Part shown: positions 8,206 to 57,613 of the stretch, one piece after another
Layout of the letters: every line of letters starts with the position of its first letter
How positions within the stretch are numbered: position 1 is the first letter of the stretch
NCBI GenBank assembly: GCA_002269645.1
Contig: NIVC01000695.1
Location: forward strand, 186,001 to 250,000
Origin: Macrostomum lignano
Taxonomy: Eukaryota
DNA length: 64,000 nt
Direction: 5' to 3'
Position numbers and translations under genes: made by a program
Notes under the pieces: model-generated
Databases searched by the model: none
Told to the model about the DNA's origin: nothing
Seen by the model: the letters and a program-made list of their open reading frames with translations, nothing else

Positions 8206-8282
8206 AAAAATAAGACAACAGTCAGAGCACTCGTGAGTGCCCTAAAAGGCAGCGCCACTAAGATTCTGGTTTCCAATCCAGA

Positions 8283-26400: not shown

Positions 26401-29400
26401 CAGAATCTGGGAGGCTGGTGGCCCAGCAACTGAGGATCTGGGAGGCTGGTGGCCCAGCAACTGAGGATCTGGGAGGCTGGTGGCCCAGCAACTGAGGATC
26501 TGGAAGGCTGGCCCAGCAACTGAGGATCTGGGAGGCTGGTGGCCCAGCAACTGAGGATCTGGGAGGCTGGTGGCCCAGCAACTGAGGATCTGGGAGGCTG
26601 GCCCAGCAACTGAGGATCTGGGAGGCTGGTGGCCCAGCAACTGAGGATCTGGGAGGCTGGTGGCCCAGCAACTAAGAACCTGGGAGGCATTAAAGGCTCC
26701 ACAGAGCTATTAAAATTTGCAGTGTTAATTAATTAGCCTACCTGGCACAGTCTAGTGGTATCAGCGATGCAGCAGTTTGAAGTAGCCAACGAAGCTGACA
26801 AAACCAAATCCTCAACCGAAGCTTCTAGCAGGCTTTCCACAAACACAGACCGAGCCCGGTCCAATGGCTTGGCTGGACAACCGCTTGACGAATAGACGGT
26901 ATCGTCAAGCCTGTGAGACATCGGCAGTGGACCTCCCGGACGGTACTCGGCCAGGAAGGCGGCGCCCTGCGGTGTGGCCATCCAGCTCAGACTGCCGCTA
27001 CTACTATTAGTATTATTAGCAGCAGTAGCAGAGGCCAGCGTAGCAGCTCCATCATAGAACTGTTTAGCTATGCAAGCGGGCAGGCCTACCCGCCTGGCGG
27101 CCAGTCCCATTGACGCTAGCAGACGGATTCGTTCGCCAATCGGTAGGACAGTATCGGCACTGCTACCAGCTAGGTTTAGAAAGTTATTACAGTTGAGTAG
27201 TAGGACTCGGAGTTGCCACCGGCTCACCGTGCAATCGCTTCTGTGTCTGTCGGTATCGCCAATGCCGATGGTCAGTTGGAGCAGGCGGCCGTATGTTAGA
27301 GAGGCCAGGGCTGCCAGATGGCGCTGCTGCTCTGACACTGGCAGGGCTAGCCGGAACTGGATTAAGGCGAGGAGGGGATGAGGCAATAAGAGATTGCTAA
27401 TCTGTTGGTAGAATGGTGTAGCTTAGATTGCTAATCTGTTGGTAGAATGGTGTAGCTTAGATTGCTAATCTGTTGGTAGAATGGTGTAGCTTAGATTGGT
27501 AATCTGTTGGTAAAATGGTGTATATTGGTAATACTAACAAAGCGGTAGGTAATACCAACAAAGCGGTAGGTAATACCAACAAAGCGGTAGGTAATACCAA
27601 CAAAGCGGTAGGTAATACCAACAAAGCGGTAGGTAATGCTAACAAAGCGGTAGGTAATGCCAACAAAGCGGTAGGTAATGCTAACAAAGCGGTAGGTAAT
27701 ACCAACAAAGCGGTAGGTAATGCTGCACTAACCCAGACTCACCAGAGAGCAGATCTGCAGGCAGGCGGCCAGCACCAGATGCCAGCCCATCTGGGCCATC
27801 CAATCAAAACTGCCAGCCACGGGCAGAGGCCGATGAAGCAGCACGAGACAGGTGCGCAGCCTGGACCAAGCTCGATCCCAGCTGCCAGCTCGAATATCCG
27901 AGTCTGCAAGGCTGCAGCACCGTTCGAATGCCAGCAGGCGTGCGGCGTGTCGCTTCGGATCCTCCGACCGACTCACAGTGCTTGGCAACGGGCTATAGCG
28001 GCAGCCCAAGCACAACAGAATCAAACAGTTCACCAGAGTGGTCAGCCACCACCACACAGAGCTGCTCCAGCCGTTGTCTTCTTCTTTTACTAAATCCACA
28101 CTTTTCAATGCTCGACCAGACGCGGAGCCAGATAAGCCGACACCGGCGCCGACACCGCCGCTGAGCCAGACGGCGCCCAGCTGCAGCGGATTAAGCAGAA
28201 ACAGAAAACAGCAAGCGGCAAGCATCATAGTGCAGCGAACTGCTGTAGATGGCTGTTGCATACTACTGCCGCTAGTAACTGTAGCAGTAGTCACTCCCGA
28301 CTGCTGCAACAATTGTACCAGAGTGGAACCAACTCCGATAGCATTGTTGCCATGGTTACCGCCGGAAGAAGATGGGCTAGGCAAACTGGTTGGCGAGTCT
28401 GTGCCATTGCCAGCGCTACTGTTGTGATTGCTGCTGCCGCTGCTGACCACGTCTTCGAATGCGCCGGGTGACAGGCCGCCGGCTGAGAGAGAGGAGTCTG
28501 CGGGTGTGGGTGATTGCATTGGAGACTTGGGTAATGTGATGGCATTGGAGACTTGGGTAATGTGATGGCATTGGAGACTTGGGTAATGTGATGGCATTGG
28601 AGACTTGGGTAATGTGATCGCATTGGAGACTTGGGTAATGTGATGGCATTGGAGACTTGGGTAATGTGATGGCATTGGAGACTTGGGTAATGATGGCATT
28701 GGAGACTAGGGTAAGGTGATGGCATTGGAGACTTGGGTAATGTGATGGCATTGGAGACTTGGGTAATGTGATGGCATTGGAGACTAGGGTAAGGTGATGG
28801 CATTGGAGACTTGGGTAATGATGGCATTGGAGACTTGGGTAATGTGATGGCATTGGAGACTTGGGTAATGATGGCATTGGAGACTTGGGTAATAATGATT
28901 AAATAAAGCCAATAACATTTACCTCGCTCATGGATGTAGTAACCAGACCCGTTACTATGCTGTTGCTGGCCCAATTGTCGTCGCAAGCTTTCATTCTCGC
29001 GCTCCAACAGGTGAATACGATCGATAGTGCGCTTCAGCACCAGACTCTTGCTTAGCTGCAATGCGAGGGTTGGGAAATGCAGAGGTAGAAAAATGTTACA
29101 ACTTGCTTGCATATCGCATATATAAGCCTCAGTTCGCATCGGCCTTGACTTTAACAACCAATCGGAACTTCCACCTCATGAACCTTTTTTCGGTTATTGC
29201 TTGGGCTTGGGTTTCTAATCCAGACAATCCAGACGTCCCTGACAAGCTTGAAGCACTCTGTCATTTCTGACAGGCGAAACACTTCTTCATGTGCGCCTGG
29301 CGCGGATTCCGAAGAGGATCTGCTTTGATCAGCAAGCCGCTATCTTGCCCGACTCATGGAGTTCTAGGACGTAGTCTGGATTGGAGGGCCAACCCCCAAG

Positions 29401-32400
29401 TCACTGAGAGTGTGTACATGCCCATTACATGCGCAATATCTTGGCAAAAGGGGGCCCAGCCAAGGTAAGTCGCAGAAACAACCACCCAAAAAATACGGAC
29501 GTAGTACTATGAGTAATTAGATGACGAGGCATATAGACCTAATAATACAGTGATAGTTACTCCTGCCGTTTACCAAATATTAATAAAGCAGTTGGACACC
29601 AGCAAATTTTAGCACTCCTTGTCTCAGAACCTTGCATCCAGTGCAGGAAAGAAGAAGGGTCATAAATCATTTTACTCCCGATTTCCTTTCCTCTCTGACA
29701 GGGGGATGGGTACCTAATCCTGCCCTTTGCTTACCTGTAATGTTATACACTGCGATGGTTAATTTATTGCAGTAACATTTCCCTATCACACTCAGTGGCA
29801 TAGCCTATGTATATAGATTGACTAATATAATCATTTCTTTTGTAATTAAACCCAACCCTGTTGCTTATGAAACACTGGTTAAACCAAAAAAAGTTTATTT
29901 AAATTGTTTACTAAAACACAATTGTAGTTTGTGGATTCGCCTGCTATTGCACTCAAGGAGTGGATAATGAATTAGGGGAGAGGGTACTGAATAAGGGGAG
30001 AGGGTAATGAATAAGGGGAGAGGGAAATGAATAAGGGGAGAAGGTAATGAAGAAGGGGAGAGGGTAATGAATAAGGGGAGAGGGTACTGAATAAGGGGAG
30101 AGGGAAATGAATAAGGGGAGAGGGTAATGAATAAGGGGAGAGGGTACTGAATAAGGGGAAAGGGTAATGAATAAGGGGAGAAGGTAATGAAGAAGGGGAG
30201 AGGGTAATGAATAAGGGGAGGGATAATGAATAACGGGAGAGGGTAATGAATAAGGGGAGAGGGTAATGAATAAGGAGAGAGGGTAATGAATAAGGGGAGA
30301 GGGTAATGAATAAGGGGAGAGGGTAATGAAGAAGGGGAGAGGGTAATGAAGAAGGTAAGAGGGTAATCAGAGAAGGTAATTGATAAGTGGAAAGAGTAAT
30401 TAGAGAAGGTAATGAAGAAGGGGAGCGGGTAATCAGAAGGGCAATCATTGAGAGTAATGAAGAGGTGTAAATACCAGCAAATAAGTAATTTTACAAAACG
30501 CACCTTGCCATCACGCCCAACCAGCATCCTGCGCAGCTCGTCAATCTTGTTATTAATACTCTGCCTGTACTTCTTCTCGATGACGGTGTGCGAAGATTTT
30601 CGACCGCCGCTGCCGCCGCCAGAGCGTCGGTTGGTCGAGCCGCTGACGCCGCCGCCGACATCCTGATCGACCAGCATCTCCTCGTCTTCCTCATCATCAT
30701 CCTCGTTGTCCTCGAAGGTCGGGGCTGGAGGTTCAGCAACTCGAGTGTGCTGCTTTTGCTGCTGCTGTTGAACAATGTGCTGCTGAAGCGGCAGCGACGG
30801 TGGCGACGCCTTCGGTGGGGAGACTGACAGAGGCGGGGTCAGCCGCTCCAGCTGAGGGCGAGAATTTCAGTCGCATGAGAATTGCGAATGGCGACTTGAG
30901 ACATCCCTGAAGACACAGCAGATTTCAGCTGAGACACCCCTGAAGACACAGCAGATTTCAGCTGAGACACCCCTGAAGACACAGCAGATCTGAGACACCC
31001 CCGAAGACACACCAGATCTCATCTGAGACAACCCCGAAGACACAGCAGATCTCATCTGAGACAATCTTGAAGACACAGTAGATCTCATCCGAGACACCCC
31101 TGAAGACACAGCAGATCTCATCTGAGACACCACCGAAGACACAGCAGATCTCATCCGAGACACCCCTGAAGACACAGTAGATCTCAGCTGAGACACCCCT
31201 GAAGACACAGCAGATCTTATCCGAGACACCCCTGAAGACACAGTAGATCTCAGCTGAGACACCCCTGAAGACACAGCAGATCTCATCCGAGACACCCCTG
31301 AAGACATAGCAGATCTCATCTGAGACAATCTTGAAGACACAGTAGATCTCATCCGAGACACCCCTGAAGACACAGCAGATCTCATCTGAGACACCCCTGA
31401 AGACAAAGCAGATCTCATCCGAGACACCCCTGAAGACAAAGCAGATCTCATCCGAGACACCCCTGAAGACAAAGCAGATATCAGCTGAGACACCCCTGAA
31501 GACAAAGCAGATCTCAGCTGAGACACCCCTGAAGACAAAGCAGATCTCAGCTGAGACACCCCTGAAGACAAAGCAGATCTCAGCTGAGACACCCCTGAAG
31601 ACAAAGCAGATCTCAGCTGAGACACCCCTGAAGACAAAGCAGATCTCAGCTGAGACACCCCTGAAGACAAAGCAGATCTCAGCTGAGACACCCCCGAAGA
31701 CACAGCAAATCTGAACTGCTGCGATGCCAGTACCATGTACTAAAAATTCTCAACTATAACTTTACAATAAAAGAAAAACTCACTTTAAAATTAGCTGCAG
31801 TCACAGTCGGCTGCTGCTGCTGCTGATGCACAGTTGACACATGACCGGGATTTTGAATTGGCGCCAAAGAAACCGCAGGATGATTAGCGGCAGTAGTAGT
31901 AACAGTAGTATTATTAGCATTTGGCAATACAAGTTGCAAACTACCACTAGCCAATTGTTCCAACTGAGCGGTGGAAAGTTCTCTAAAAGCAGCGGCTAGC
32001 TGCTCTGCTTGTGGTCCGGGCCTGTGCTGCTGCAACTGTTGCTGCTCCTGGCAGACTTGGCGTACTAATTTAGCAATGAGATCTTCGCGCTTGGCTGTGT
32101 CCTCGCGCTGTTGCAACAGCAAGGCGATGAGTTTATCAGTGGCCGTGACAGACTGGTTAGCAGCGGACTGAGAGGCAACTGCTGTGGAAGTGGTTGAACT
32201 GACAGCACACGGCGTGGTTGTCACGGCAGGCGGAGCGGGTGTCACCACGGGTCCGGAGGTTGGATTGCGCAACAAAGACTCGAGAACGTTGAACTTTTGT
32301 TGATGGACAGGTTCAGCTTTTAGCAATGCTGGCTGCTGCTGCTGTTGTTGCTGCTCCAGAGGCTGGTCCAGCACGCCATTGAATTGGTCAAACTCGCCCA

Positions 32401-32523
32401 TGATCTGCTGGACAAATGTATCATCGAGCAGTGGATCGTGATCTGGTATCACGCCTGACATTAGGTCAAAGTCGGTGCCAAGCTCATCTGTGCGCAGGTC
32501 GCTCAGGATGTCATCTAGAGGAT
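23455..32523 (-). CDS. SREBP: Sterol regulatory element-binding protein (bHLH-Zip, two TM segments, C-terminal regulatory domain); 5' end unresolved
   Basis: Minus-strand exons 32514 (or 32523)-31784, 30851-30504, 29055-28923, 28497-27743, 27356-26742, 26259-25918, 23826-23455; phases consistent. bHLH SHTVIEKKYRQSINNKIDELRRML...|LSKSLVLKRTIDRIHLLEREN carries the SREBP-diagnostic Tyr. Acidic N-terminus, TM1 with NP, luminal GRALKS, and C-terminal motifs DPESCWWAA, CLIGLDWLLSAR, LAAHEAALRLLSGANP. Confidence 0.92.
23865..24800. repeat. 26-bp intronic minisatellite (GGATTTGGAGATTTCTTGTGGATCTG), last SREBP intron
   Basis: About 35 units. Confidence 0.95.
26405..26685. repeat. 28-31 bp intronic minisatellite (GATCTGGGAGGCTGGTGGCCCAGCAACTGAG)
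   Basis: About 9 units inside an SREBP intron. Confidence 0.93.
27388..27722. repeat. Two adjacent intronic arrays: 34-bp (AGATTGCTAATCTGTTGGTAGAATGGTGTAGCTT) and 21-bp (AATACCAACAAAGCGGTAGGT)
   Basis: About 3.5 and about 9 units. Confidence 0.9.
28515..28892. repeat. 24-26 bp intronic minisatellite (GGAGACTTGGGTAATGTGATGGCATT)
   Basis: About 15 units. Confidence 0.94.
29965..30440. repeat. 20-bp intronic minisatellite (GAATAAGGGGAGAGGGTAAT)
   Basis: About 22 units in the intron that splits the SREBP bHLH. Confidence 0.93.
30895..31705. repeat. 33-bp intronic minisatellite (GAGACACCCCTGAAGACACAGCAGATCTCAGCT)
   Basis: About 24 units. Confidence 0.95.
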
Positions 32524-34370
32524 CTAGAGGAGAAGAGGTTGTTGGGAATAAGAAATGATGGGAAAAAATTAATGACAAGAAAAACTAGTTCAAGATCTCA
32601 AATATTTTCAGGACTTAGAATATAGGTCAAATAAATAGATTTGATAAAGGATTTCTTATATTTTCTGATATCTCTTCAACAATAAGTATCCCCTGGCAGT
32701 CTATTGACAGTCCCTTGATGGGCTTCTTACAGACACTTGATAGCAAATTTGTATACTTAGTTCTTAGCTACAGATTTATATTACTGCATATCTAAGTTAG
32801 TATTACTCTTGCTGTGATACAATGTAGATGAATTAAGGATATACTATAAAAGGTCCTAAGATATACTTATGAAAATGTAAGTGCAAATAATGTTCCTTAG
32901 CATTCTTAAAATCACTCTTTATGCATTTATCACCTTTGGCTAATATATGGTTTGCTACCTTCCCTATGTATCTCTTCTGCTGCTAGCTAGGCTGGAGCTA
33001 TCATTAGCTTTATTCTGTAATTTTTTATGTACCACCTATTGCCATGCCAGCCTAGTAAATAAATGCAAATTTAAACAAAAGTTAGCCTCTATCAATTGTC
33101 ATGAATATTGCCAATTTGACTCAAGTGTTATTTGAACATTAAATTTGATTGCCATCTATCAAAGTATTTGTATTGCTTCAAAAAGTTCTATCACTATACC
33201 CATACAAAAACTCTTTATACTAGGTCAATTGATAGGGACTCAAGTGAAATTTTGAAAGTTACTTTTTAGTATTTTTCGATTAGGTCTTTCAATTAATAAT
33301 TTATAGAATTAGTGATTACTTGAAGGTATTTTGCTTTAACTTGTACTCGTTACATTATTTACTTTGCTGGTTACAAAACTTCATATCAATTTCGTTGTGT
33401 TTTACTTCTTCATCTTGACAATCTTTTCTTAATTTTGTTTAACTTTACATGGACAATACACTAAAAGACCTGATCCTGATTCCCGAATCCCAATCCCGAT
33501 CCCGAGAAAAAAATTATTCCCGATTCTGATCCCACCCAAAGATTTCAATCCCGTCCAACCTCTAGTCTCAACCTTATTACCAAAGCTAATAAATTGACCC
33601 ACTGAATACAAATTGACAACCAACCCTTTCCCATAATAGACTAAACCTTTGGTTCTCCTGAATATTTTGAACCCATTGTAAATTGAGCCAATTGAGCTTC
33701 TTATTTGGAATACTATCTTTTTATGTTATTAATATGTTTTAAGACAATATCTAGAGATTGTGACTATCAAACACAACAATCTGTAAGTTACTATCAAGTG
33801 ATTTGCATCATCAAGAAGTCAGTTGAATCTGCTACCTCAGTTATTTAGCTCTCAGTGATTATCAAAGTTATATATAGAGCCAAAGTAGTAAGAAACTAAA
33901 AGACTAATGATACTCAAGATAGAAAACAACAAACATCTAAAATAATCCACTAATATAACTAGAATAACCAAAAACCTTTGCAACAATGTTTAAAAATTAG
34001 ACCTAGATTTAAAATATAAATAGGATTATAAAAAAACATTTTTTTACAATTTGGCTACAACAAATGCCTTTGTTGCAAATATAATTTAACATTTAAAGTT
34101 ATTTTTTTCTAGGGACAACAAAGGCAAAGCTAACCTTTTGAAAAAATAAAAACAATATCAATGAGAATTTTGTCAATTTTTTAGCATATCTAATTTAAAA
34201 AATAGTTTATTATATTAGCTTTATATTTTATCCTAGAAATGACTTTTCATGCTAGAAATTTCCATTTTAAAAAAATACAAAAATAGAGGCCTCTTTGTAT
34301 CTTGTACATTATAGTTTTTTTAAAAGCCACTTCTATGCAAAAGATAACATAGTTTGCTATTACTCTATAC

Positions 34371-37422: not shown

Positions 37423-39239
37423 TCAGCCGCAGCTGGTTGATGCGAACCTGACAGACACGAAGCCCTGATCGCCAGTGCAGCTGCTGCTGGAGACGCAGCC
37501 GTCCAGGCAGAAGGAGCCACCGCCGCCGCCGATGTGACTGCGGCCGACACCCGCGCCGCCGCCACTGAAGCCTCCGCCTCCGCCAGCAGCGCCTTTGATC
37601 GAGCCGCGCATGCAGCCGCAGCCGCCGCCGCCGCCGAAGCCGCCGTGGCAGGCGCTGCCACCACCGGCGCTGCCGCCGACCCAGCCTTGGGCCCGACTGC
37701 CGCCTCGTTTGCCATCCCAGGAGCTCCGCCTAGGGTTGACTGCCCTGCCAAGCCAGCCGGCGCCGCAGCCTCCGTGGTCAGAGTTTGATGGGGTGCCACT
37801 CGGATTGTTGGAGCCCGGCTGGCCGTTGATGCCGCCGAAGCCTTTGTTGTTCTCAGCTCCGATGCTGTCCGAGCCGTTAGTTCCCACTTGTCCTGGCCTT
37901 CCTGCAGTTTTTTGTATTACTATCGTACAGAGAACTACACGATGCACAATAGGGTACGGAAACTTAATGTCCTGTAGAAACCACAATTAGTTATACCGAC
38001 ATATCAACTATCAAACTATAATACGTTTTTGGAAAGTTTTTATCAGACAGTCCAGTTTTTACCGAAAATATATACATTACGGAGATAAGAGCTGCATGTT
38101 TTCATGCTATCAGCACAAAATTTATTAATGCTTTGAATGGCAGGCAGATCCAATGTTCATCTTATTATTGATATGTCTTGCCTTTCTTTTGTATAGCTCT
38201 ATTGATATTCATAGAGCCTTTTGTTTACGTCCTGTGCCTAAACATCATAAAAAATGGCACAACTTGATTCACTAATTTTATGAATCTTTTTTATCATGCT
38301 TTGCTCATTGACAGTAACGATATGAATTTTTTTTTAAACTGCAGTTATTAAGCATTCAAACAAATGGGACAGGCTTTTAAATAAATATGGCTTATTGGAC
38401 TAATTTATCAAAAAAACCTGCCTCCTTAAAAGTTCGAGAAACATTCACGCTCACCATCGTGTCCTATACCGGCGCCACCGCCCCCGCCGGCAGCCAGCAG
38501 CAGCAGCTGGTCGTTCGTCCGGTACACGAAGCTGCCGCCGCCTCCGCCGCCTCCTTCGCTGCTCAGGGAGGTCGAGCCGCCTGTCTGGCCCACAACGATG
38601 CTCAGCTGGGTGCCGGCCGTCAGGTTGACTCTGGCGCTCACCTGGGCTCCGGGGCCTCCGAAGTTCATCAGGGCGTTGTTGCCTCCTCTGGCACCGGCTG
38701 CCTCAATGAGGTAGCAGCCGCTAGCGGGAGCCGTGAAGGTTTCGATCGATCCGTTTCTGCCCGAGCTGCTGTCTGTGGGAGTTTATGATGAAGCTTTGAC
38801 TGCAACGATTGTCGCAGACATTTTCAAACAATTCCATATCTCGAGACTCACTTCTCAGCAGCACTGAAGCCGACGTCAAACTCATAAGGTTTTGGTCAAA
38901 CTCTTCCGCTTTCCACAAATTCACAGCGCTATCGTCAGGCGAGCCGAGCTGTATCGTCACGTGACTTCCGTTTGGACCGGCGGGCTGCCCCAATGACTCA
39001 TTGTTGATGCTGACTGTCCGACAGACTCTGGCGGTCTTGTTCAGCTCGACGACAGCGCAGCCCCTGAGCTGGCACAGCAGCAGGCAATGACTTTCCTGAG
39101 CGACATCGGTCTTGACGAACAAGCTGATCACAGAGTCAATCAGCTCAACGGAGCTGCTGGTGACGAATCGATTGAAGCGTTTGAGGCTCAGAACGTTTTT
39201 CACTGAAATTCGAGCGAGTATAAAAAGCAGTTCACACAT
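37423..39239 (-). CDS. Predicted secreted protein: PAN/apple-like Cys motif plus ALK/LTK-type glycine-rich domain
   Basis: Exons 39239-38852, 38772-38455, 37901-37423 (both introns phase 1). Hydrophobic N-terminus MCELLFILARISV; SHCLLLCQLRGCAVVELNKTARVC; then IETFTAPASGCYLIEAAGARGG...GAQVSARVNLTAGTQLSIVVGQTGG...GGGGGSFVY...LLLAAGGGGG and terminal GFVSVRF, the layout of the ALK/LTK glycine-rich domain. No TM segment or kinase. Confidence 0.8.
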
Positions 39240-40065
39240 GCACATCCGCATGCACTCTCGTAGGAGTAGCAGGGGAGGCACGAAGCAACGAGACCGTACT
39301 CACCGCTTACTTGAATAAGCACAATCGCGAAAATTACCCAGAATTTCATAGTCTACGACAAGATTGTAAGCTTTTAGCCTGTTAATGCTATTCAGATTGA
39401 TGGTGTGCGGGGAGATGGGAAGCAGGTATATAGATCTGCTTTATACAATTTATACCGTTTGGAGCGCAAGCTGCAGCCAATCCGTGATGAAGGACGGAAG
39501 CTGGGAGATAGGAGCTCTCAGTCTCAGCTGTCGCCACCCTGTAAGTCTAACAAAGAAGCTAGCTCCATCTCAAACCGCCCCCTAAAAAAATTTCGGCTGC
39601 CACATCTAGTCTTCATCACATGCCACCGCCTGCTGAGTAGTGATTCTCATTTTACTTCAGTAGTTAGTAACTGACGGGTTAGCGGGTTGAAGAAAACTGC
39701 AGAGCTGGATGCATGTAGAAGCAAATTATTGCTTCTTTTGGTTTTCTGCTTTTAATGAGAGCCACCCCATACCGGCTATACGGGCTAACAACTAGAGTAT
39801 AAAATATGCGTTTGCATAGCCATTTGAGAACAATAGCGTATGACGCATGTCAAGACGATGAACAATGCTTCAATTCTACTATTTGCTGTCGCCCTATGAT
39901 GTTCGCACTTTGCAGCTCTCGCAGGAAAACCGGCGGGAAGTACCCAATTTGTCGCATGGTAGAGAAAGGAAGGCACTTGCATGTCTTTCGTGACTAAGAT
40001 AGATCAATTATGCATACCGCGTGGCTGCCGCAGACATTACTTAGTCGCCATGCACCCGATGCAAC

Positions 40066-40398
<333 letters not shown>

Positions 40399-40858
40399 GA
40401 AGCTCTGAGACGATTCATGATTACTAGTCATTTCAGCGTATTAGAATATAGGCAAAAGAATCGATCCTTTTTACTGGTGGTTCGCTCTTGATCAGCCCAT
40501 TTTGCATACTTCAACCCTACCTACACCAAACCCCAACCCTCCCCCCACTGACGACTCTTCAAAGCAGCTGCAGAGGCAGATCTGCCTATTGTGCCTTCTT
40601 CAGTCCGAATCGCTATTGTGTGGCGCCAAAGCCTTTGAGACCCCACTGCGCCACTGCTCTTCCTAAATGGTTGCTGCTGCAGCTCCAACTATAGCTTTAG
40701 TTAGACAGTATCTTCTGCGAATACCAATGCCTCCCTTCCCCCTTGAGTCGCCTTGCCCATTCGAACAAGGAGTTGAGCCCAGGGAAAAAGCTGCTGGTAA
40801 TTATGGCTGGGAGAAACCTGTTTCCGCGTGGGGTGGTCAACGCCGTGTCGATCTAGGC

Positions 40859-40865
40859 TATATAA
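40859..40865 (+). promoter_or_regulatory. TATA box of the micro-exon gene
   Basis: GGCTATATAATCTACC about 95 bp upstream of the ATG; conserved in the paralogous copy at 47503-47509. Confidence 0.7.
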
Positions 40866-40958
40866 TCTACCAGCATAGCTCCCTCCGCTTCCTCGCTCAC
40901 TTGTCAAAAATTGAAGACTGAATTTTGAACTTGAGTTAAGCTTTCTACACACGAGGCG

Positions 40959-42401
40959 ATGTCTATCCTGAGCAAAGCTACTCTCGGAGCCGTCTTGTTG
41001 GGTCTGGTGCTGTGCTGCAGCGTTAGCGCCATCCCAGTATACAAACCCAGATGTAAGTTAACACGCCTCGACTTATTGTTGACTGAAACTGACCTTTGGA
41101 ATAAATGAATTTTTATAACCCGCAGTTGCTGACTCCGGCAGTTCCGGTTCCGGAAGCTCCGAGCCTCCAATGCCTCCTCCGATGCCAACTGGCGAGGCTC
41201 CGGGTGAGTGGCTCAGATATTTGACAGTATTCTTCCTAGCTATAAAGATGCATATAAGTGATTTGACAATTAATTGACGCCTTCTTTACAGCCAGCGAAG
41301 CCCCACCACCGTTCATCCCAGGCGTCGGAATCCGTGAGTTTCTTTGGAGCTGAGTTTTATAGTTGCTCCTAAACAATCAAGTGTTCTAAAACGTTATAAA
41401 GTTATTTTGACAATTATATTTATTGACTTATTATACTTGCAGCCAGCGACGAGCCGCCAACTTATTCCCCAGACATCGGAATCGGTAAGTCTTTCGAAGC
41501 TGATATTCTTAGCTGTTCCTTAACAATCATGCGTTTTTAACATGCAAAGCTGTTTTGACGATTGGACCAAATCACTACTTAATTACAGCTAGCAATGCGC
41601 CGCCACCGTTCATCCCAGGCGTCGGAATCCGTGAGTTTCTTTAGAGCTGAGGTTCACAGTTTTTTCCTGAACAATCAAGTGTTCTAAAACGTTATGAAAG
41701 CATCTTACTAGTTGTGAAGTTTGCTAACTGTAATATGTTTTTGACAATTGCATTGATTGACTTGCTTACAGCCAGCGAAGAGCCGCCAACTTCTTTCCCA
41801 GGATTCGGAAGTCGTAAGTTTATCGGAACTGATTTTTGAAGTTGTTACTGAACAATAAAGTGTTCTAACATGTTTTTAACACGTTAGTTTTTGACAATTG
41901 CATTGATTAACTTGCTTACAGCCAGCGAAGAGCCGCCAACTTCTTTCCCAGGATTCGGAAGTCGTGAGTTTCTCGGAGCTGATTTTTTAAGTTGTTACTG
42001 ACCAATAAAGTGTTTAGCACATGTTTTCAACACGTTAGTTTTTGACAATTGGATTTATTGACTACATTCTTACAGCAAGCGAAGAGCCGTCAACTTCTAT
42101 CCCTGTTGTGCCGTACGGAGGAAATGGTGAGTTTCTAAGAGCAAACCACGAGTATGAAAGGTTTCTGACATTCATGCTGGATTGAATCCGAACTTCGAGG
42201 CCTATCAAGCGCAGATAATTCATTTACCGAATTCACATTGCCAAATAATCCGCAGCGATGAACGAAGAGCCGACTTCTCCGCCAGGAGCTGGATTTGGAA
42301 GTAAGTGCTAAAGCAGTTAATTTTATATATGATAGACAGCAACAGACTTTGTGCATGACACTCCGTTATCCGCAGCTCCACTGCCGGTAGTCCGCGGCTG
42401 A
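40959..42401 (+). CDS. Micro-exon gene encoding a 167-aa secreted Pro/Ser/Glu/Gly-rich peptide
   Basis: Exons 40959-41052, 41126-41203 (78 nt), 41292-41333, 41443-41484, 41589-41630, 41772-41813, 41922-41963 (each 42 nt), 42076-42126 (51 nt), 42256-42300 (45 nt), 42376-42401. All introns are GT(A/G)AGT...(T/C)AG and phase 1. Open protein: MSILSKATLGAVLLGLVLCCSVSA-IPVYKPRFADSGSSGSGSSEPPMPPPMPTGEAP-ASEAPPPFIPGVGI-PSDEPPTYSPDIGI-ASNAPPPFIPGVGI-PSEEPPTSFPGFGS(x2)-PSEEPSTSIPVVPYGGN-AMNEEPTSPPGAGFG-TPLPVVRG*. AATAAA at 42504-42509. Confidence 0.9.
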
Positions 42402-44046
42402 AGGCCTGACCTGGCAGAACCTGCCGCAGCGATTGTGAACGAAGCTTGACGCGACACCGAATGAAGACAACAATTTCTAAGACGAGAATTAAGCAACTCT
42501 CAAAATAAAGACATTTAACTACCTAATCATTTTGGAAGTTTTTTTTCATTTTCCTTTTGCCTAAGTGCATGTTTATCCACACACCTCTTGTAAGTTCCTT
42601 TTGAGACGCGGTGGAAAGTTAAATAATATAAAAGTGACATTTATCGGTTGAGAAGACAATAAAAAATTCTTGAAACCCAAGACTGTTTATCATGGACAAC
42701 TGAAGTATCATATTCAAGGATGCTAGAAGTTATCTAGCAAAAGAATTGTGGGGTGAGTTCACTAATTCAAAAGTAGCCATCCCTCTACTGAAGTTGTCCA
42801 TGCTCTTTATCTTTATTCTCATTTATCTTGGTTGTTTCATCTGAGCAAAGTTAATAAAATGACAGCTAGCCTTTTGATTTTTGTTCGGAAACTTCATTTA
42901 AAACTGCGGTAGATGCATTGAATGGGACGTAGCACCGTCCGTCGCAGAGGTCAAACGTACATGCAGTACTGCAGTACCACTAAAGCTCAAAATGGAGTTG
43001 AAACCGTTTTGCGTGGCTTAACAATGGAGTTTACTTCATTACGCTCGTAAAAACGCTTGTGCATACATAATCAAACTTCAACAACAGTTGTACACAAATG
43101 CTGTTATGAACAAACAGTATTGTCTCGTTTTACTAATTTTCTACGATAAAACAAAGGCAAAATCGACTGACAGCAATGTGGATTTTCAATTAGATACTGG
43201 CCATTGAGCATTGACGCATTGGTTGATTTACTGATCTATCAGTGAACTTCAAGTCTCCATGCCATGTCTATTTAAGGCTTTTTAGCTTATCTACCAGCCT
43301 TAGTTTATATATTTTATATTGTAAAACACCTTTCTAGAGCTCCAGGTCGTCACCAAAATATCACAGGAATCAGAAAGACAATTGATGGCTGGAACTGCGG
43401 ATGACGGTGCATTGGAATACAGGTATATGTGCACTACTGAATCAATAAAAATACCTTTAAAAATGCATTTCAAGAATGTTGATTTGTATCGAGGTGATAG
43501 TTTGACATTCTCTAGTCTTGCTATTCCAAAAATCATCTCCTTTAGTTTCTCTTGAGAAAGTTTAGATACAGGCTTCGCATTTGCATGCCAGATGTAATTA
43601 GTCAAAATTTGAGCTCGGTATTACATACATTGAGAGGCATGCGATGATCGTATTAGAGCAAAGAGGCAATGCAATTGCTTGGACGACATTCAAAATAGGA
43701 CTATTCAATAAGGACTGCTCTAACTTAAAAGTCGATTATTTGCAATTTTACTGCTCGCTGCACTCAATAAAAATGATCAATATCATTTTTGGGGAGTTGC
43801 TCTGCTTTCTATAGCCTCCGTAAGTTCTCTACACCATTTTAATGTGCAGCCAGCTAGGAGTATCGACCAGGAGCTTCTGCGCATGCACGCCATGCATGAT
43901 TCGATATGCTGTCTTGTCTTCGCCAGCACGAGGCTTCCTCATGCAGGTACTGTAAGAGCCACATTCAAGAGTCGCACCACCCCAACACTTCCAACTCTAA
44001 CAATCACAACTCCTGCTGGTAGTTTAAACTCACTTCGTATTGATCC

Positions 44047-45150: not shown

Positions 45151-45789
45151 GTGCGAAGAATCTCCTGCGCAACTTTTGGGTGGCAATTGGTAGATGAATT
45201 TGAAGATTATTTCTAAATTTATTAAGTTCAGGGGCAGTGCCCCTGATGACAAAAAAGTTACCTTTAGATTTTGGTTATAAAAAACTAAGAACTGCAATGG
45301 GGACCCATCTAGGGGGTCGAGTCAAGATGGTCAATCTTGACCACCCAGGAAAAATGAAAGTTCTGTGCCAACATAGCAATAAAATCTCACCTGAGATGCT
45401 AAAATTGGCTTCAAATCTGCTTTGAGTGTAATTTGTAGGTTGCCTTGTACTCTGTAGCGTACTACATGTACATGTAACCGTGTACTAACCGTGGCCAACC
45501 TGCTTAACCTGGCATTGCAGACCGCCTGGACGCCGTGCACGATTGTCGATGCCGATAAGCATCCGCCGGTCAACTTCCAGCATCGCGTGGTGGATTCGTC
45601 GATATTATGGTTGGCCGCGCCATGGTGAGCACTAGCGGCTTTCTCCGGCTTGAATTTTTTGGCTCGCAGATGCAGACCACGCCTCACCGTGGCTGAAAGC
45701 ATTCAAAGCTCTTGCAATCTCTAAAACGATTGCCGACAACTTCACGGCCTTGTACGTGTGGACTGAATACACTTGAGAAGCTAACTCGC

Positions 45790-46590
45790 ATCATTGTTTT
45801 GAGACGCTGCCATTCTAAGAGAAGGAATCTGCTATCGTCAATTATATGAAGCCCAAGAAGTCTTCAAGAGAGCACGAGATTTTTTGGTCCTTCGCCAAGC
45901 AGCTGGTGAGGAGTCCATCACGGATGTTCTATCCCGCATGAGGTCACCGCAGGAATCAGCAACCCAGAAGTTCAGAGGCGGGTGCTGGGTGCGATTCAGA
46001 CCTCGTCTGGCGTGTCTGGCCCAGAAGAACAAAGGCAAAAGAAGGAACTGCCAATGTCGGATATTGTCGACCTCGTCAGGAACATTGAACAGGTATCGTC
46101 AGGTAGACAATGATTCGGTTCATTTTGCCAAAGATCGTGTCGATTTGTCGATCATCTCTGGAGGCAACTCAATTGCGAGGAACTGTGAGTTTTGTTGCAA
46201 GTCTCATCCTGTCGGCAAATGCCCAGCTTACACCAAAGCTGCTCAAAATTCGGAAAGCGCAACCATTGTTGCCTCAGTTTGTCGCTAGGCCGGAGTGAAA
46301 GCAGTGCATCACTCGGATGTCCGACCTGATGAGACCAGTGATGGTAGTATACCTGAAGTTCTTCATCTTACGGACACGGACACTGTTCAAGCTATATCTG
46401 AAGCATTAGAGGACATCATAGTCAATGGTACTAAAGTGCCCATGCAGCTTGACACTGGTGCTTGCTTTCAAGCAAAATCTGAAAGGCCCTAGATTGTCCC
46501 GTTCAATTGCTGCATATCATCGCAAGCTCGAGGCCTGTGACGGACACGAAATTTGCGTAAAATGCTCGGAAAGCTTTCCAAGACCGTCTG
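45790..46590 (+). mobile_element. Degenerate Ty3/Gypsy gag-protease remnant
   Basis: Zinc-knuckle-like CEFCCKSHPVGKCPAY...ASVCR followed by aspartic-protease motif IIVNGTKVPMQLDTGA; broken by stops and frameshifts. Confidence 0.72.
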
Positions 46591-46600
46591 GATGAGAGGA

Positions 46601-47307
<707 letters not shown>

Positions 47308-47632
47308 GCTCTATCCAGTCAAAGCTCTTCCCAATGTAGCTAGCAGCATCTTTTGCGGACATGAATGCTTCACTTCCCTTTTTGAGTGGCCATTATCATT
47401 CGAACAAGAATTAAGTCCAGAAAAAAGCTGCTGGTAACGCTGGTGCTGGAAATTATTTTAGGTTATTTCGGCTTGGTGTGATCCCGCCCTCTCGGTCTAG
47501 GCTATATAATCTACCGGCATGGCTCGCGTGACATTTAGCGCCGACAACACAATCTTCACTTGATGTTTAACAACTAGAAATAGGTCTCTTGCTGCTAAAC
47601 ATTATCATTCACCATTTGAATTGAATCCACAG

Positions 47633-48230
47633 AAAAGCTCAGCTTCAACAAGTGCTTCCAGACCTCGGTGGGCTGGAACGGAGTCTGCAAGCGAGCCATG
47701 GACGGAAACAAAAGCCAGGACTACTGGAAGCACTCCTGCAGCCACACTAATAACTTCAAGGGATTCAAGAGCTTTACTAAACCTGTTCATATAAAGGAGG
47801 TCGTCATCTACAACAGGCAACCAGCTGTCTCTGAGCCAGTGCTCTCAGAGCTCTGTTGGCTGGGATGTCGTCTGCGGCAGAGCCATCGATGGAAACACCA
47901 ACCAGTACTACTGGGGACACTCGTGCACTCACACAAATCTGGAGAAGGGCTGGTGGATGGCCAAGACTCCGAAGCTGGCTCACATCAAAGAGGTCAAGAT
48001 CTTCAACAGACTCGACTGCTGTTCTAAAAGACTCACAAACTTTGTGGTTACGGCGGACGGTCACTTGCGCGCCTCGTACAACTCTAAAAGCGCTTTCAAT
48101 GTGAAGACGTTCAGTTGCAACAGACTAGGCAGGGTAGTGAAGATCACCAATCGCAAAAAAAACTTTCCTGACCCTATGCTAAGTTCAGGTGTTCGGCTTT
48201 TGCGGAAATCGGTATACGGGCAGTAAGTTG
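47633..48230 (+). pseudogene. F-type lectin (fucolectin) two-domain pseudogene
   Basis: Domain 1 (CFQTSVGWNGVCKRAMDG...SCSHT...IYNR) is truncated and joined out of frame to domain 2 (SQSSVGW...RAIDGNTNQYYWGHSCTHT...WW...IFNRLDCCSKRLTNF), which has the H...RxDxxxxR fucose-binding motif. The end reads LTLC*VQVFG only after a frameshift near 48160, with TAA at 48180-48182 where E is expected. Confidence 0.85.
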
Positions 48231-49375
48231 ATAAGTCTTTCTGCGTTGCCTTCGAAGACATTGCTAGGCTAAATTGTCTCGTGAAAAATTCACTAAGCCA
48301 AACTTCAAATGAGTGCTAAAGAATGCAGTTTAACATATTATAAATAGTAAACAGACGCTCCGTTATCCGCAGCTCCACTGCCGGTTGTCTACGGTGTTGT
48401 GAGGCTTGACGACATCGAATGAAGAGTAGAAGACGAACGATTTCTAAGATGGAGAGGATTGAGCAACTCTCAAAATAATACTTTTAATTAGCTAACAATT
48501 GTGGAAGTTTTTTTTCATTTTCCTTTTGTGCAGGTTTAATTAAACACTTCTTATCAGTTCCTTTTTGAGAGGTTGGTGGAAAGTTTTTTATACAAAACAT
48601 TTATCGGTTGAGAAGACAATATAAAAATTCACGAAACCCAAGAATATTTATCATGGACAACTAAAGTATCACGTACAAGGATGCCAGAAATTCTCTAGCA
48701 TCTTTAAGAAATTGTCCGAAGTAGGTTTACTGGTTCAAAAGTACACATCCCTGTACTTAAATTGTCTATGCTACTTTCTTTCTTTTCATTTATCTTGGTG
48801 CTTTCAACTGAGCAAAGTCGATAAAATGACAGCCTTTTGCTTTTTGTTTGGAAACTTCATTTGAAACTGCGGTAGATGCATTGGAAAAGACGTTGCACCG
48901 CCTTTGCAGAGGTCAAACGTTCAACATGCAGTACTGCAGTACAACTAAAGCTCAAAATGGAGTTGAAATCGCTTTACGTGGCTTAATAATGGACTTTAAT
49001 TCAATAAAACAAAATACATGCGCTTACATAATCAAGCTTAAACAATAAAGTTGTACACAGATACTGTTATAACCAAACAGTATTGTCTCGTTTTACTTAT
49101 TTGCAACGATAAAACAAAGGAATAAATCGACTGACAGCAATGTGGATTTTCACGAGCCATCGGTCACTGGGCATAAACGAATGGGTCGACTGGTCTATCC
49201 GTGAAATTTGAGTCTCCTTGACTGATCTATTTAAGTTTCTTAAATTTATCTACCTGCTTCTATAGTACATGTAGAACACCTTCCGTCAGTACTGGAGCAT
49301 CAATTGGCATCAATACAAAATCACAGGAATCATGCAGGACAATTGGTTGCTGAACCGCGGATGCATTGGAATACA

Positions 49376-51384
49376 TGATGAGGACGCACTTTTTTCCAAA
49401 CCACGCGCTAGCACATGGGCTCTAAACTTACTAGCCTACTAACAGTGGGCAGTGGGCATTTTTATTCTTTTTCTGCGAATTGTCATAGAATCTATACTAG
49501 ATATAATGTCTGGTCATGCTAGTAGTCATAATAACATAGGTGCAGCTTTTTGGGTCATAAATCATCGCTTTCGAAGCTGGTCTGACAGCCACCTGCGCCT
49601 CACTCAGTGTTGAAGCGGGCGCCAGATGGTCTGAGAGGATGCGGGCGGTAGCTTTTTTCTCATCATTTTGACAGGCCATCAAGATTTATGAGGTCAGAGC
49701 CTATTGTTCGTGTTCACTCAAGCGTGTGACAGCTTTGACAGCTATGCGTTTTACCTCTAAAAGTACTTTGGGATTAGCGATTAGCGGTTTCTCTTCATTA
49801 TCTTCACTTTCTATTTAATAAGAGCTTTCTAATGTATATTTTTTCATTAATTTCTGTCAATCCTACGCGAAAAGTCATAAATCATTTTGTTGCGATTTTG
49901 ATTGATTTATGGCCGCACCTGTCATCTTTTTACGATCCTGTGGGAACTGATAGGATCTCCCGGTCACGTGATTCTGGGTAGCAACCAGCTTAGCCAATCA
50001 GAAAATTCGGCGATCAATTTAACAAAACGGCTCAGCCAATCAGAATCGACGTGTCATTATAACAAACTGTGGTCCAGTTGGCGGCTATTTAAACCGGTGT
50101 TTTTGGCCCGCTCGGACCTCAACCGGCTCAACCGGCTCTCCCGCGGAGGAACCTTCCCGACATTTCTGGTTCCCGGAGCCCGACCGTCGTTTCTTGATCC
50201 CCGGATTGCGACTTCCCCCCTCATCATCAAGGACGAGTCCCCCGGTCACCAGCAGCGAACATCAAAGTTAAGATCATCACCTGCTAGCTATCAGCGAAGA
50301 TTGTGTCAGCGCGCATCATTCCGAGTCTACAGCTGCGAAGCATCAAGCCGATTAGGTCACTGTGGATTTCCTGGTCTCCGGCTGTTGAGTTTCTGATTGG
50401 TTGGGTGAGAGGCTACCTGGACTTGCTTGATTGGGTGATTCCTTATCTGTCCCCTGTTTCAGTAGCTGAATTAGGCGCACACTTTTGCTCACTTTGTTCA
50501 GTAGTGCTGTTGCTGAGGCAGAAGTCATTCAATAATACTGCTAGTAGTCTAAAACTCCAATTCAATCTAAAGTGTGAAGTGATTGATCTAAGGAGAAGGT
50601 TAAATCTAACAGTTATTTTTATCGGTTTTATTTCTTTGTTCGCCGATGGCTCAGATGAGTAGCTAAGCTAGTAGGCGCCGGTCACAGTGGACCAATGGCA
50701 AGGCAGTTCTCAGTCGATCAACCTATCAAATCAATGAGCAAAATTGCCAATAGTGCGAAATCGGCGCCAGAGATGTACTCTGTGCACTCTAGGTTCGCCA
50801 AGCGGCTCGGGTAATGAATCATGCGGTCTCTGAAGTTCGAGTTAGTCTATCATCAGCGCTATGAGAGGCTAGTTGGCGCGTTGAAGGCCAAAAGTACAAT
50901 TCTTCGTATTTAGCAATGTAATAGTACATGTAGCTACCCCATAGTCTCGCCACTGCAAGAATCCCCTGCACAAGTCCCCTCTGTACCTGCATGGCCAATG
51001 CGATCTAGTCCCAGCAGTGTCCCTTATCATCGGCTATGACTTCGAGATTGACAGCAAAAAGACACTAGTTGGCAGGTAAGTGCAAAGCGGTCTAGTCGGA
51101 AGCCCGATTTCGAGAGTCCCGGTGTGGTGAGCCAGGACGTACGGGCTGGTGGCAGCAAGTTAGTTGATCTGCGGATTAGCTAATTTCTACTTTCAAAATT
51201 CTCCCTGCTCGTCTCTCGCTGTCCCTCTCTTAGCTATAGGACCTAGGCTGCTCGCCACACGATCAAGCTACCATGGGGATGACCATCTGACAGGAGTGGG
51301 GGGCCAGGACTCTAATTGATTTATTTCTGAGACCTGAGGCCCGAAAGCTTCCCCACAAGGGGGCCGGAAGGTCGAAACCCATCA
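49376..51384 (+). mobile_element. 2009-bp solo-LTR-like insertion (Gypsy-type signature)
   Basis: Ends TGATG...CATCA; 4-bp TSD TACA (49372-49375, 51385-51388). The empty site is preserved in copy A (GCATTGGAATACAGGTATATGTGCACT, ~43410). Internally two AGCCAATCAG boxes and TATTTAAA near 50010-50095. Confidence 0.85.
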
Positions 51385-51691: not shown

Positions 51692-52599
51692 TAAGCATAC
51701 CTGCGAAAATTGAGTTCCTAATACACGCAACTTAGCAGTAGCTTTCTTGGGAGTTGCTTCGCTTCCTATACAGTAGCTGATAGACGACTTTCTACACCAT
51801 TTTAATTTTCAGTCAGCCAGGAGTATCGACCGAAACCACAAGTTTCCTCAAGCAGTTGCTGCAGAGCCACATTCAAGAGTTGCTGTGGCACCAACCCAAC
51901 ACTTTACAACTGGTCCACTGTAGCATGTTATAGACACGATCTAACAGAAAATGAATTTTTTTCAGTTTTATTTTAAGTCTTCTGGTTTAAACTTACTTTG
52001 TACTGATAAATACGCAGAATTAAGTCATAGCTGGATTGTTTTTCGGTTGCGCCTGACTGTCTGACTATGAGAAAGTCCGGATCGCTGCATGTACACTCTG
52101 AATGTACATGACCGGTTTAAGATTATTGCATAAACTCAAACAGAATAAACCACTACGATTAGAAGTTGATAGGCTGAATCAAGAATTTTTTAGAGTCTAA
52201 TTAAATTATTATTAATCAGTTAGCTACGTTAAAAGCACAATACTGACTTTCACCAAGCAATGCAAAAATTATTCCAACGTTCGTAGGTGATAAAAAATTA
52301 GCTATAGTTATTACGAATGATTTGTAATGACACACCTTGCTCAAAAGAATCACGGCTCCAAAATTGAAAAATCCCATAATTTGCTAACAACAGCGTAGAC
52401 TAAACATCAGCTTGTTGAAAAATGACTAAAAATTCGATAGCAAAGAGTCACTGAGCTCACAGCTGACAGGCAGCAAGTCAGCAGCAATAGCAATGCATTT
52501 AATTGGGAAAAACAACTCAAAAAATGGGTACTCTCCGGAGTGAGATGAAAGCATTTATGAAAGTGGGAAAGGACGAGTAGGGAGACAGTGAATGAGTAG

Positions 52600-54240
52600 G
52601 GGAGAGAGCAGATGAGTAGGGGAGAGAGTGGATGAGTAGGGGGGAGCGGATGAGTAGGGGGAGCGGATGAGTAGGGGGAGCGGATGAGTAGGGGGAGCGG
52701 ATGAGTAGGGGAGCGGATGAGTAGGGGGTGGATGAGTAGGGGGAGCGGATGAGTAGGGGGTGGATGAGTAGGGGGGAGCGGATGAGTAGGGGGTGGATGA
52801 GTAGGGGGAGCGGATGAGTAGGGGGCGGATGAGTAGGGGGAGCGGATGAGTAGGTGGAGCGGATGAGTAGGTGGAGCGGATGAGTAGGGGGAGCGGATGA
52901 GTAGGGGGCGGATGAGTGGAGAGCGGATGAGTAGGGGGAGCGGATGAGTAGGGGTGGATGAGTAGGGGGGAGCGGATGAGTAGGGGGCGGATGAGTAGGG
53001 AGGAGCGGATGAGTAGGGGGAGCGGATGAGTAGGTGGAGCGGATGAGTAGGGGGAGCGGATGAGTAGGGGGCGGATGAGTGGAGAGCGGATGAGTAGGGG
53101 GAGCGGATGAGTAGGGGGCGGATGAGTAGGGGGGCGGATGAGTAGGGGGCGGATGAGTAGAGGGGAGCGGATGAGTAGGGGGAGCGGATGAGTAGAGGGA
53201 GCGGATGAGTAGGGGGGAGCGGATGAGTAGGGGGAGCGGATGAGTAGAGGGGAGCGGATGAGTAGGGGGGAGCGGATGAGTAGGGAGAGCGGATGAGTAG
53301 AGGGGAGCGGATGAGTAGGGGGCGGATGAGTAGGGGGGAGCGGATGAGTAGGGGGCGGATGAGTAGGGAGGAGCGGATGAGTAGGGGGAGCGGATGAGTA
53401 GGTGGAGCGGATGAGTAGGGGGAGCGGATGAGTAGGGGGCGGATGAGTGGAGAGCGGATGAGTAGGGGGGAGCGGATGAGTAGGGAGAGCGGATGAGTAG
53501 AGGGGAGCGGATGAGTAGGGGGAGCGGATGAGTAGGTGGAGCGGATGAGTAGGGGGAGCGGATGAGTAGGGGGCGGATGAGTGGAGAGCGGATGAGTAGG
53601 GGGAGCGGATGAGTAGGGGGTGGATGAGTAGGGGGGAGCGGATGAGTAGGGGGCGGATGAGTAGGGAGGAGCGGATGAGTAGGGGGAGCGGATGAGTAGG
53701 TGGAGCGGATGAGTAGGGGGAGCGGATGAGTAGGGGGCGGATGAGTGGAGAGCGGATGAGTAGGGGGCGGATGAGTGGAGAGCGGATGAGTAGGGGGGAG
53801 CGGATGAGTAGGGAGAGCGGATGAGTAGAGGGGAGCGGATGAGTAGGGGGAGCGGATGAGTAGGTGGAGCGGATGAGTAGGGGGAGCGGATGAGTAGGGG
53901 GCGGATGAGTGGAGAGCGGATGAGTAGGGGGAGCGGATGAGTAGGGGGCGGATGAGTAGGGGGGAGCGGATGAGTAGGGGGCGGATGAGTAGGGAGGAGC
54001 GGATGAGTAGGGGGAGCGGATGAGTAGGTGGAGCGGATGAGTAGGGGGAGCGGATGAGTAGGGGGCGGATGAGTGGAGAGCGGATGAGTAGGGGGGAGCG
54101 GATGAGTAGGGAGAGCGGATGAGTAGGGGGGCGGATGAGTGGAGAGCGGATGAGTAGGGGGGCGGATGAGTAGGGGGGCGGATGAGTAGGGGGGAGCGGA
54201 TGAGTAGGGGGAGCGGATGAGTAGGGGGGGAGCGGATAAG
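52600..54240. repeat. G-rich ~17-20 bp minisatellite (GAGCGGATGAGTAGGGGG)
   Basis: About 90 units; source of the 608-aa and 581-aa artefact ORFs. Confidence 0.96.
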
Positions 54241-54447
54241 AAAGGAGACAGCGGATGAGTAGAAGAGTGGATGAGGAGGGAAAGAGCGGTTTGGATGCAA
54301 AATTGTTAAAATTATTAGACAGGCAAAAATTATGACGGCTCAATGCACGTCAGGGCAATGCAATGCTTAGCAAAAAAGCTTTAAAACAATTCAGCCACCA
54401 TTAAAACCATGAAAACTAAAAGCACAGCAAAAGTTATTCGGGTTGGT

Positions 54448-57613
<3,166 letters not shown>

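Follow-up and report, generated by a model that had tools for sequence, protein, structure and literature searches.

A predicted micro-exon-type gene for an acidic secreted repeat protein in the free-living flatworm Macrostomum lignano

Micro-exon genes (MEGs) have been described as platyhelminth-restricted genes whose coding sequence (CDS) is for the most part divided among small symmetric exons and whose product has a signal peptide (PMC4350168). In Schistosoma, the exons of MEGs are mostly of 6–36 nucleotides (nt), most often 15, and the introns of 100–5000 nt (PMC10526429); an operational definition asks for at least seven exons, at least half of them shorter than 70 nt and divisible by three, with a run of at least four (PMC7653826). 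One of the genomic gains proposed for parasitic flatworms is MEG organization, although Laumer et al. (2015; PMC4398949) suspected that it might be no innovation of these worms (Neodermata), and the literature that we searched reports no MEG in Macrostomum or planarians, passing mentions aside. Here we discuss a gene model at 40959–42401 on the plus strand of a stretch of DNA from the free-living flatworm Macrostomum lignano (64,000 nt; assembly GCA_002269645.1, contig NIVC01000695.1, positions 186,001–250,000; this whole stretch is 'the window', and positions are counted from its first letter). The model probably represents a real, intact, lineage-restricted Macrostomum gene, constitutively spliced and predicted to encode an acidic secreted repeat protein, not a precursor of small peptides.

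As rebuilt by script from the sequence, the gene has ten exons, of 94, 78, 42 (five times over), 51, 45 and 26 nt (Table 1). All nine introns are 73–141 nt long and in phase 1, with the donor GT[AG]AGT and the acceptor YAG, and the joined CDS of 504 nt specifies a protein of 167 amino acids (aa) without internal stop: MSILSKATLGAVLLGLVLCCSVSAIPVYKPRFADSGSSGSGSSEPPMPPPMPTGEAPASEAPPPFIPGVGIPSDEPPTYSPDIGIASNAPPPFIPGVGIPSEEPPTSFPGFGSPSEEPPTSFPGFGSPSEEPSTSIPVVPYGGNAMNEEPTSPPGAGFGTPLPVVRG. Small exons divisible by three make up 384 of the 504 nt (76%). The ATG at 40959 is the only one within 40861–40962, and hence the first after the TATA box. The locus had been picked out in an earlier reading made without database searches (the sequence-only reading), whose exon coordinates and lengths, phase-1 introns and canonical splice sites the script reproduced exactly, and whose intact TATA box and AATAAA are indeed in place (TATATAA at 40859, AATAAA at 42504). 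It had also described the gene as invisible to searches for open reading frames (ORFs), and we can confirm that no plus-strand ORF of at least 50 aa covers the exons in the coding frame. Exons 3, 4, 6 and 7 are preceded by tandem acceptors, CAGCCAG (41288–41295, 41439–41446, 41768–41775 and 41918–41925); the model depends on splicing to the first AG of each pair, as the frame would be shifted with the other, which lies 4 nt further downstream.

How does this gene compare with the MEGs? Seven of its ten exons (the five of 42 nt and those of 51 and 45 nt) are below 70 nt and divisible by three, the 78-nt exon being divisible by three but longer than 70 nt, and exons 3–9 form a run of seven. The signal peptide of schistosome MEG products, which are secreted or anchored in the membrane (PMC4350168; PMC10526429), has its counterpart in a predicted signal peptide, whereas the schistosome combination of very short exons with long introns is absent, exons here being of 42–78 nt and introns of 73–141 nt. 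Other features held in common with the MEGs of Schistosoma and of tapeworms (Echinococcus, Hymenolepis) are the platyhelminth host, the longer 5′ exon carrying the signal peptide, the run of small exons, a small, Pro-rich and domain-free product that is predicted to be secreted, and the lineage restriction of a gene missed by automatic annotation. The differences lie in the larger exons and short introns, in the origin of the internal exons as recent tandem copies, in the free-living host and in the lack of any sequence relation: no similarity to the named MEG families (MEG-1 to MEG-35 and others) was found at E ≤ 10 among 5.8 billion clusters, nor any Pfam match. MEGs are a structural class and not a homologous family; the gene belongs to that class, and its MEG-like layout is probably of independent origin. 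The sequence-only reading had recognized the layout correctly, but had assigned it to Schistosoma, and MEGs are reported from tapeworms too (PMC7653826).

The predicted signal peptide was evaluated by residue inspection and hydropathy: it has Lys6 in its n-region, a 14-residue hydrophobic core (Kyte–Doolittle scores for 9-mers reach 3.1) and, in agreement with the −3/−1 rule, Val and Ala at positions −3 and −1, respectively. The mature protein, of 143 aa, comprises 26.6% Pro, 14% Ser, 13.3% Gly and 8.4% Glu, and has an isoelectric point of 4.05, with 15 acidic residues against three basic ones (K29, R31 and R166). It is without His, Trp and Gln, and also without Cys, which is confined to the signal peptide; it includes five S-x-E motifs and seven modules of 14–17 aa of the form S-E-E-P-P-T-S-F-P-G-F-G-S, and ends in PLPVVRG. 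The signal peptide, the Cys-free mature part and the RG-stop, all claimed in the sequence-only reading, were thus recovered from the translation and hydropathy. To judge from its composition, the mature protein would almost certainly be extended and disordered. We envisage transcription from the TATA promoter and then removal of the nine short introns, most likely constitutively, to give a 167-aa precursor that would enter the secretory pathway and, by cleavage after Ala24, yield a mature protein of ~14 kDa. This might serve as a structural or lubricating part of an extracellular secretion, and the S-x-E motifs and the many Ser and Thr residues beside Pro could take phosphate or O-glycans.

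Could such a pattern of splice signals have arisen by chance? Nine of the 32 plus-strand GT[AG]AGT sites of the 64-kb window sit in the 1.44-kb locus, where 0.72 would be expected (an estimate to be read with the caveat that exons 3–8 and their introns are tandem copies, hence not independent counts of splice signals), and no such site occurs on the minus strand there. A splice-chain finder linked eight introns at the locus, compared with at most one elsewhere in the window on either strand and at most three in 30 shuffles. The GC content is 59.3% in exons and 34.7% in introns, and non-repeated exons and introns show the same contrast. Retention of any of the introns would bring in an in-frame stop within 3–24 codons, and in eight of the nine a branch-point motif (yTnAy) lies 10–45 nt ahead of the acceptor. 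The same GTGAGT donor and YAG acceptor are used by a conserved gene of the window, that for sideroflexin-5 (SFXN5). The gene model is, in our view, very likely real.

The regularity of the micro-exons can be traced to tandem duplication. Tandem Repeats Finder marks two arrays with a period of 148–150 bp (41286–41691 and 41737–42103), and alignment of each intron together with the exon following it reveals that introns 3–7 are mutually homologous, with a common block (TTTTGACAATTG..ATTGAC) containing branch-point-like TTGAC motifs. Pairwise identity between units is 72–91% for introns and 80–88% for exons; exons 6 and 7 are identical at all 42 positions, and their flanking introns are 85–91% identical. 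Exons 3 and 5 resemble each other, as do exons 4 and 6; this, with the identity of exons 6 and 7, suggests an older two-unit duplication and then a recent copying of unit 6 to give unit 7. A unit of ~150 bp (a 42-nt phase-1 exon plus an intron) has been duplicated in tandem several times, the frame being kept only in copies whose exon length was still a multiple of three. Tandem unit duplication explains the MEG-like layout, and the symmetric phase-1 pattern is a by-product of such growth. The pattern makes the gene tolerant to changes in module number, by unequal crossing-over or by exon skipping; as a way to diversity, crossing-over of this kind between 150-bp units is no less plausible than skipping.

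All the repeated exons are of 42 nt, whereas their homologous introns are of 104, 108, 109, 112 and 141 nt; the other exon lengths deviate by +3, +9 and +36 nt, all multiples of three, and the differences in intron length are not. Constant 42-nt exons beside varying introns would be the expected product of reading-frame constraint. Between exons 3 and 5 there are three synonymous changes and a single non-synonymous codon, and the variable columns fall at codon positions 1, 2 and 3 in the ratio 5/5/8, in which the excess at position 3 is not significant; tests for selection based on codon position and codon usage were likewise not significant. A tblastn search with the modules found no other micro-exon array in the window.

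Does the cassette layout point to exon skipping in numerous combinations, with a population of secreted isoforms from a single gene, as has been proposed for schistosome MEGs, whose symmetric exons are described as alternatively spliced into protein variants (PMC4350168; PMC10526429), and as the sequence-only reading had supposed by analogy with them? The reading frame would permit it. All eight single-exon skips, and the double skip of exons 6 and 7, stay in frame, and since the second base of each downstream exon is C, the codon at a skip junction is in every case NCN (coding for Ala, Pro, Thr or Ser), which makes a stop there impossible. The operational definition of MEGs is satisfied by the layout, and the near-identical donors and acceptors of the repeated units could pair promiscuously. 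However, short introns with strong splice sites are subject to intron definition, under which exon skipping is uncommon, and it is long introns that make up the regime favouring skipping. Nine full-consensus GT[AG]AGT donors in combination with introns of less than 150 nt therefore point to intron definition, and make constitutive splicing more likely than combinatorial skipping. The proposal of the sequence-only reading thus stands as to frame compatibility, in every skip tested, but the strong donors and short introns favour a constitutive pattern. None of nine isoform sequences was present in the protein collection searched. Schistosome MEG introns, by comparison, reach ~5 kb (PMC10526429), and for the schistosome gene meg-8.2 a skipped exon was found in one of ten cDNA clones (PMC12998952). 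A combinatorial system at this locus seems to us rather unlikely.

Some 6 kb downstream of the gene lies a paralogue of its two ends. A blastn comparison of the gene ends with the window revealed a tandem segmental duplication, of which block A (40066–43421) includes the gene and block B occupies 46600–49375. Each block has a (TAAC)n microsatellite and ~190 nt of promoter, the latter at ~75% identity. Within the promoter, the 20-nt TATA block is identical at 20 of 20 positions, occurs just twice in the window and is the longest perfect run in its upstream block. Intron 9 and exon 10 are also common to both blocks, with a perfect run of 28 nt (42361–42388 = 48358–48385), and the 3′ untranslated region (UTR) and 0.9 kb of downstream sequence are 77–85% identical. 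The 28-nt run was considered as a sign of constraint and dropped, as the downstream block has many runs of 20–28 nt; the idea that intron 8 and exon 9 have homologues in block B was also rejected (z ~2.3, with some shuffles scoring higher). The microsatellites, at 40067–40398 in A (~83 copies) and 46600–47310 in B (~175 copies), are ~450–560 nt upstream of the promoters.

Between these shared ends, the bodies of the two blocks are unrelated. That of A consists of the 5′ UTR and exons 1–9, and that of B of ~1.5 copies of a sequence of the F5/8-type-C or galactose-binding-like kind (Pfam PF22633, at 33.7 bits where the cutoff is 27.8). The body of B has no signal peptide and is spread over three reading frames, with a stop inside its FLTLC*VQVFG motif; at the equivalent of the exon-9 donor there is a dead site, ATGAGT, and AATAAT stands in place of AATAAA. 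In all this, block B looks like a pseudogene. It does have a GTAAGT donor of its own, at 48225, which is in phase 1 relative to the lectin frame and would lead into the last exon, common to both blocks, in the frame used by block A. The A and B loci exemplify, on a small scale, phase-1 exon shuffling within a tandem pair. That copy A is intact whereas copy B has lost several of its signals is mild evidence for the maintenance of A.

Block B also bears on a second alternative, that the locus is not a working gene at all, but either a young or decaying silent locus (for example, a duplicate in a polyploid genome) or a 150-bp minisatellite with splice-like signals. Several observations would suit this idea, and count against the reading that we prefer. 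The product has left no trace in the databases searched: it belongs to no Pfam family, no similar protein was found at E ≤ 10 in the 5.8 billion clusters (which include UniProt entries for M. lignano), and exact matches to it and to eight skip isoforms are absent from 15 billion proteins. A metagenome scan for the spliced junctions of exons 6/7 and 7/8 gave no match, and one with the back-translated protein matched 600 stretches, of which none was confirmed by tblastn. Between units, exons are no better conserved than introns, and purifying selection on the modules is only hinted at, not demonstrated. All three frames are open in the 42-nt exons; what fixes the frame is therefore exon 1, with its ATG and signal peptide, together with exons 2, 9 and 10, which are unique. 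The window is crowded with non-coding minisatellites, as befits the repeat-rich genome of M. lignano (PMC5730564), and block B has decayed (frameshift, stop, dead donor and altered polyadenylation signal). The gene is known here from sequence alone, and its likely function is proposed from composition alone. On the other side, the signals of copy A are all intact, from TATA box, ATG and signal peptide through the splice sites to the stop and AATAAA; exons 1, 2, 9 and 10, which are unique, and likewise introns 1, 8 and 9, share the phase, signals and GC contrast of the repeated ones; and changes in exon length are all multiples of three, whereas those in intron length are not. A non-working locus is a distinctly unlikely explanation.

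It is highly improbable that the gene encodes a prohormone, a source of small bioactive peptides cut from the modules or from the C-terminal TPLPVVRG, with conversion of the terminal Gly to an amide. The signal peptide, the repeated modules and the C-terminal Gly after Arg are in keeping with this. In a neuropeptide prohormone, however, mono- or dibasic cleavage sites would flank the repeated peptides, each with a Gly ahead of the site. Here, basic residues are limited to K29, R31 and R166, and no mono- or dibasic site stands beside the modules or before TPLPVVR; an Arg-amide could at most form the end of the entire 14-kDa protein. The amidated TPLPVVR-NH2 of the sequence-only reading is thus unlikely, for want of a processing site ahead of TPLPVVR. 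Moreover, the last exon reads eight codons here and 16 in the paralogue at 48373, where it runs on as PLPVVYGVVRLDDIE*; most simply, then, the RG-stop is a derived early stop, an apparent truncation, and the C-terminal Gly is accidental.

For an acidic secreted repeat protein from a constitutively spliced gene, the closest functional analogues outside the MEGs may be tropoelastin and the genes for secretory calcium-binding phosphoproteins (SCPP genes). The vertebrate tropoelastin gene likewise has uniform codon-splitting exon borders and small in-frame cassettes, and its product is Pro/Gly-rich and disordered; PGVGI and PGFGS here recall the VPGVG of elastin, although PG-x-G occurs only about six times, and the Macrostomum protein lacks Lys/Ala cross-linking domains, has only 143 aa, is acidic and shows no homology to tropoelastin. 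Vertebrate SCPP genes (those for caseins, salivary proline-rich proteins and statherin) also combine a signal-peptide exon with small symmetric exons, have grown by exon duplication, and encode disordered secreted products, rich in Pro, Ser and Glu, with S-x-E motifs; some in-frame exon skipping is known among them. They differ in that their introns are in phase 0, where those described here are in phase 1, and they belong to an unrelated lineage and lack homology to our gene, in which phosphorylation would be a motif-level guess from the five S-x-E. The phase-1 end of the signal-peptide exon and the 1-1 symmetry of the modules are, finally, reminiscent of Patthy's class 1-1 exon shuffling, as is the phase-1 link, in block B, between a lectin-like exon and the last exon common to both blocks, but the modules here are low-complexity repeats of 14 aa and not folded domains.

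Table 1. Features of the predicted gene and its surroundings (window positions)
Feature	Position	Strand	Remarks
Core promoter, with TATA box TATATAA at 40859–40865	40852–40871	+	20-nt block identical to 47496–47515
5′ UTR (inferred)	40890–40958	+	Start assumed ~30 nt past the TATA box; no upstream ATG
Exon 1, coding part, 94 nt	40959–41052	+	ATG, signal peptide, then IPVYKPR; phase-1 end
Signal peptide, aa 1–24	40959–41030	+	Predicted cleavage SVSA/IP
Exon 2, 78 nt	41126–41203	+	FADSGSSGSGSSEPPMPPPMPTGEAP
Tandem array of exon-plus-intron units, period ~148–150 bp	41286–42103	+	Tandem Repeats Finder and alignment
Exon 3, 42 nt, module type A	41292–41333	+	SEAPPPFIPGVGI
Exon 4, 42 nt, module	41443–41484	+	SDEPPTYSPDIGI
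Exon 5, 42 nt, module type A	41589–41630	+	SNAPPPFIPGVGI
Exon 6, 42 nt, module type B	41772–41813	+	SEEPPTSFPGFGS
Exon 7, 42 nt	41922–41963	+	Same sequence as exon 6
Exon 8, 51 nt, diverged module, +9 nt	42076–42126	+	SEEPSTSIPVVPYGGN
Exon 9, 45 nt, diverged module, +3 nt	42256–42300	+	MNEEPTSPPGAGFG
Exon 10, coding part, 26 nt	42376–42401	+	(T)PLPVVRG and TGA at 42399–42401
Polyadenylation signal AATAAA	42504–42509	+	103 nt past the stop; followed by T-rich block 42533–42558
Paralogous block B	46600–49375	+	Shared ends; unrelated lectin-like body 47529–48320

Elsewhere in the window, the gene for sideroflexin-5 lies at 54451–57590 on the minus strand (Pfam SFXNs, 190 bits for the exon 56599–57051), with a long trinucleotide repeat of the CTG/CAG type (57067–57570) between its first two coding exons. 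Where in frame, its exons are 93–100% identical to two UniProt predictions from M. lignano, P0060 and P0087, which are themselves frameshifted or chimeric for sideroflexin-5; the next hits, mostly from vertebrates, are at 70–78%. The free-living flatworm that the sequence-only reading had guessed as the host is thus Macrostomum, the sideroflexin exons matching M. lignano entries. On the same strand, ORFs at 26733–32578 resemble an SREBP-like bHLH-zip factor (HLH, PF00010, 26.9 bits at 29895–30677) and are broken up by minisatellites inside or beside the exons. A probable homeobox gene occupies 16865–19671 of the plus strand, where the ORF 19258–19671 opens with KVWFQNRRMKRKK, the end of homeodomain helix 3; this fragment had no match in Pfam. 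Nor was any Pfam family found for a 187-aa ORF at 37423–37986 (minus strand), which is very Gly-rich, with GGGGG runs and scattered Cys, or for the neighbouring ORFs at 37423–39281, 45331–46288 and 49902–50396. Scans with Rfam and for tRNAs gave no hit in the window.

Minisatellite arrays are located at 1771–3377, 4619–7442, 7766–8276, 11426–11927, 12502–13387, 23543–24803, 30867–31736, 52517–54343, 58680–60507 and 61549–62079, and give rise to spurious ORFs of 150–600 aa in several frames and on both strands. They fit a genome of which 15% is simple and tandem repeats (PMC5730564).

A lone orphan gene for a repeat protein, known from its sequence, is a modest finding. The locus does show how secreted genes with short exons slip past annotation, and the swap of bodies between tandem copies that have a promoter and last exon in common provides a tidy small example of phase-1 shuffling. 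In the duo-gland adhesive organ of Macrostomum, release is thought to be due to a negatively charged secreted substance (PMC9229212), and a small acidic secreted protein would, speculatively, be the right kind of molecule for such a releasing factor. If the gene is expressed, it is open to study in a flatworm in which transgenesis and RNA interference are available.

More far-reaching would be the case of a flatworm, early-branching and free-living, with a functional cassette gene of the MEG type, its symmetric phase-1 exons being skipped or variable in copy number so as to make a family of secreted acidic isoforms. We think this unlikely, but if it were true, MEG organization would be no innovation of the parasitic flatworms (Neodermata), and Macrostomum would offer a model for MEG biology that is tractable by transgenesis and RNA interference. 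As it is, the MEG-type layout has here been visibly made by tandem duplication of an exon-plus-intron unit, and the presence in Macrostomum of an intact gene that answers to the MEG definition implies that this architecture can arise, or pre-existed, outside parasitism.

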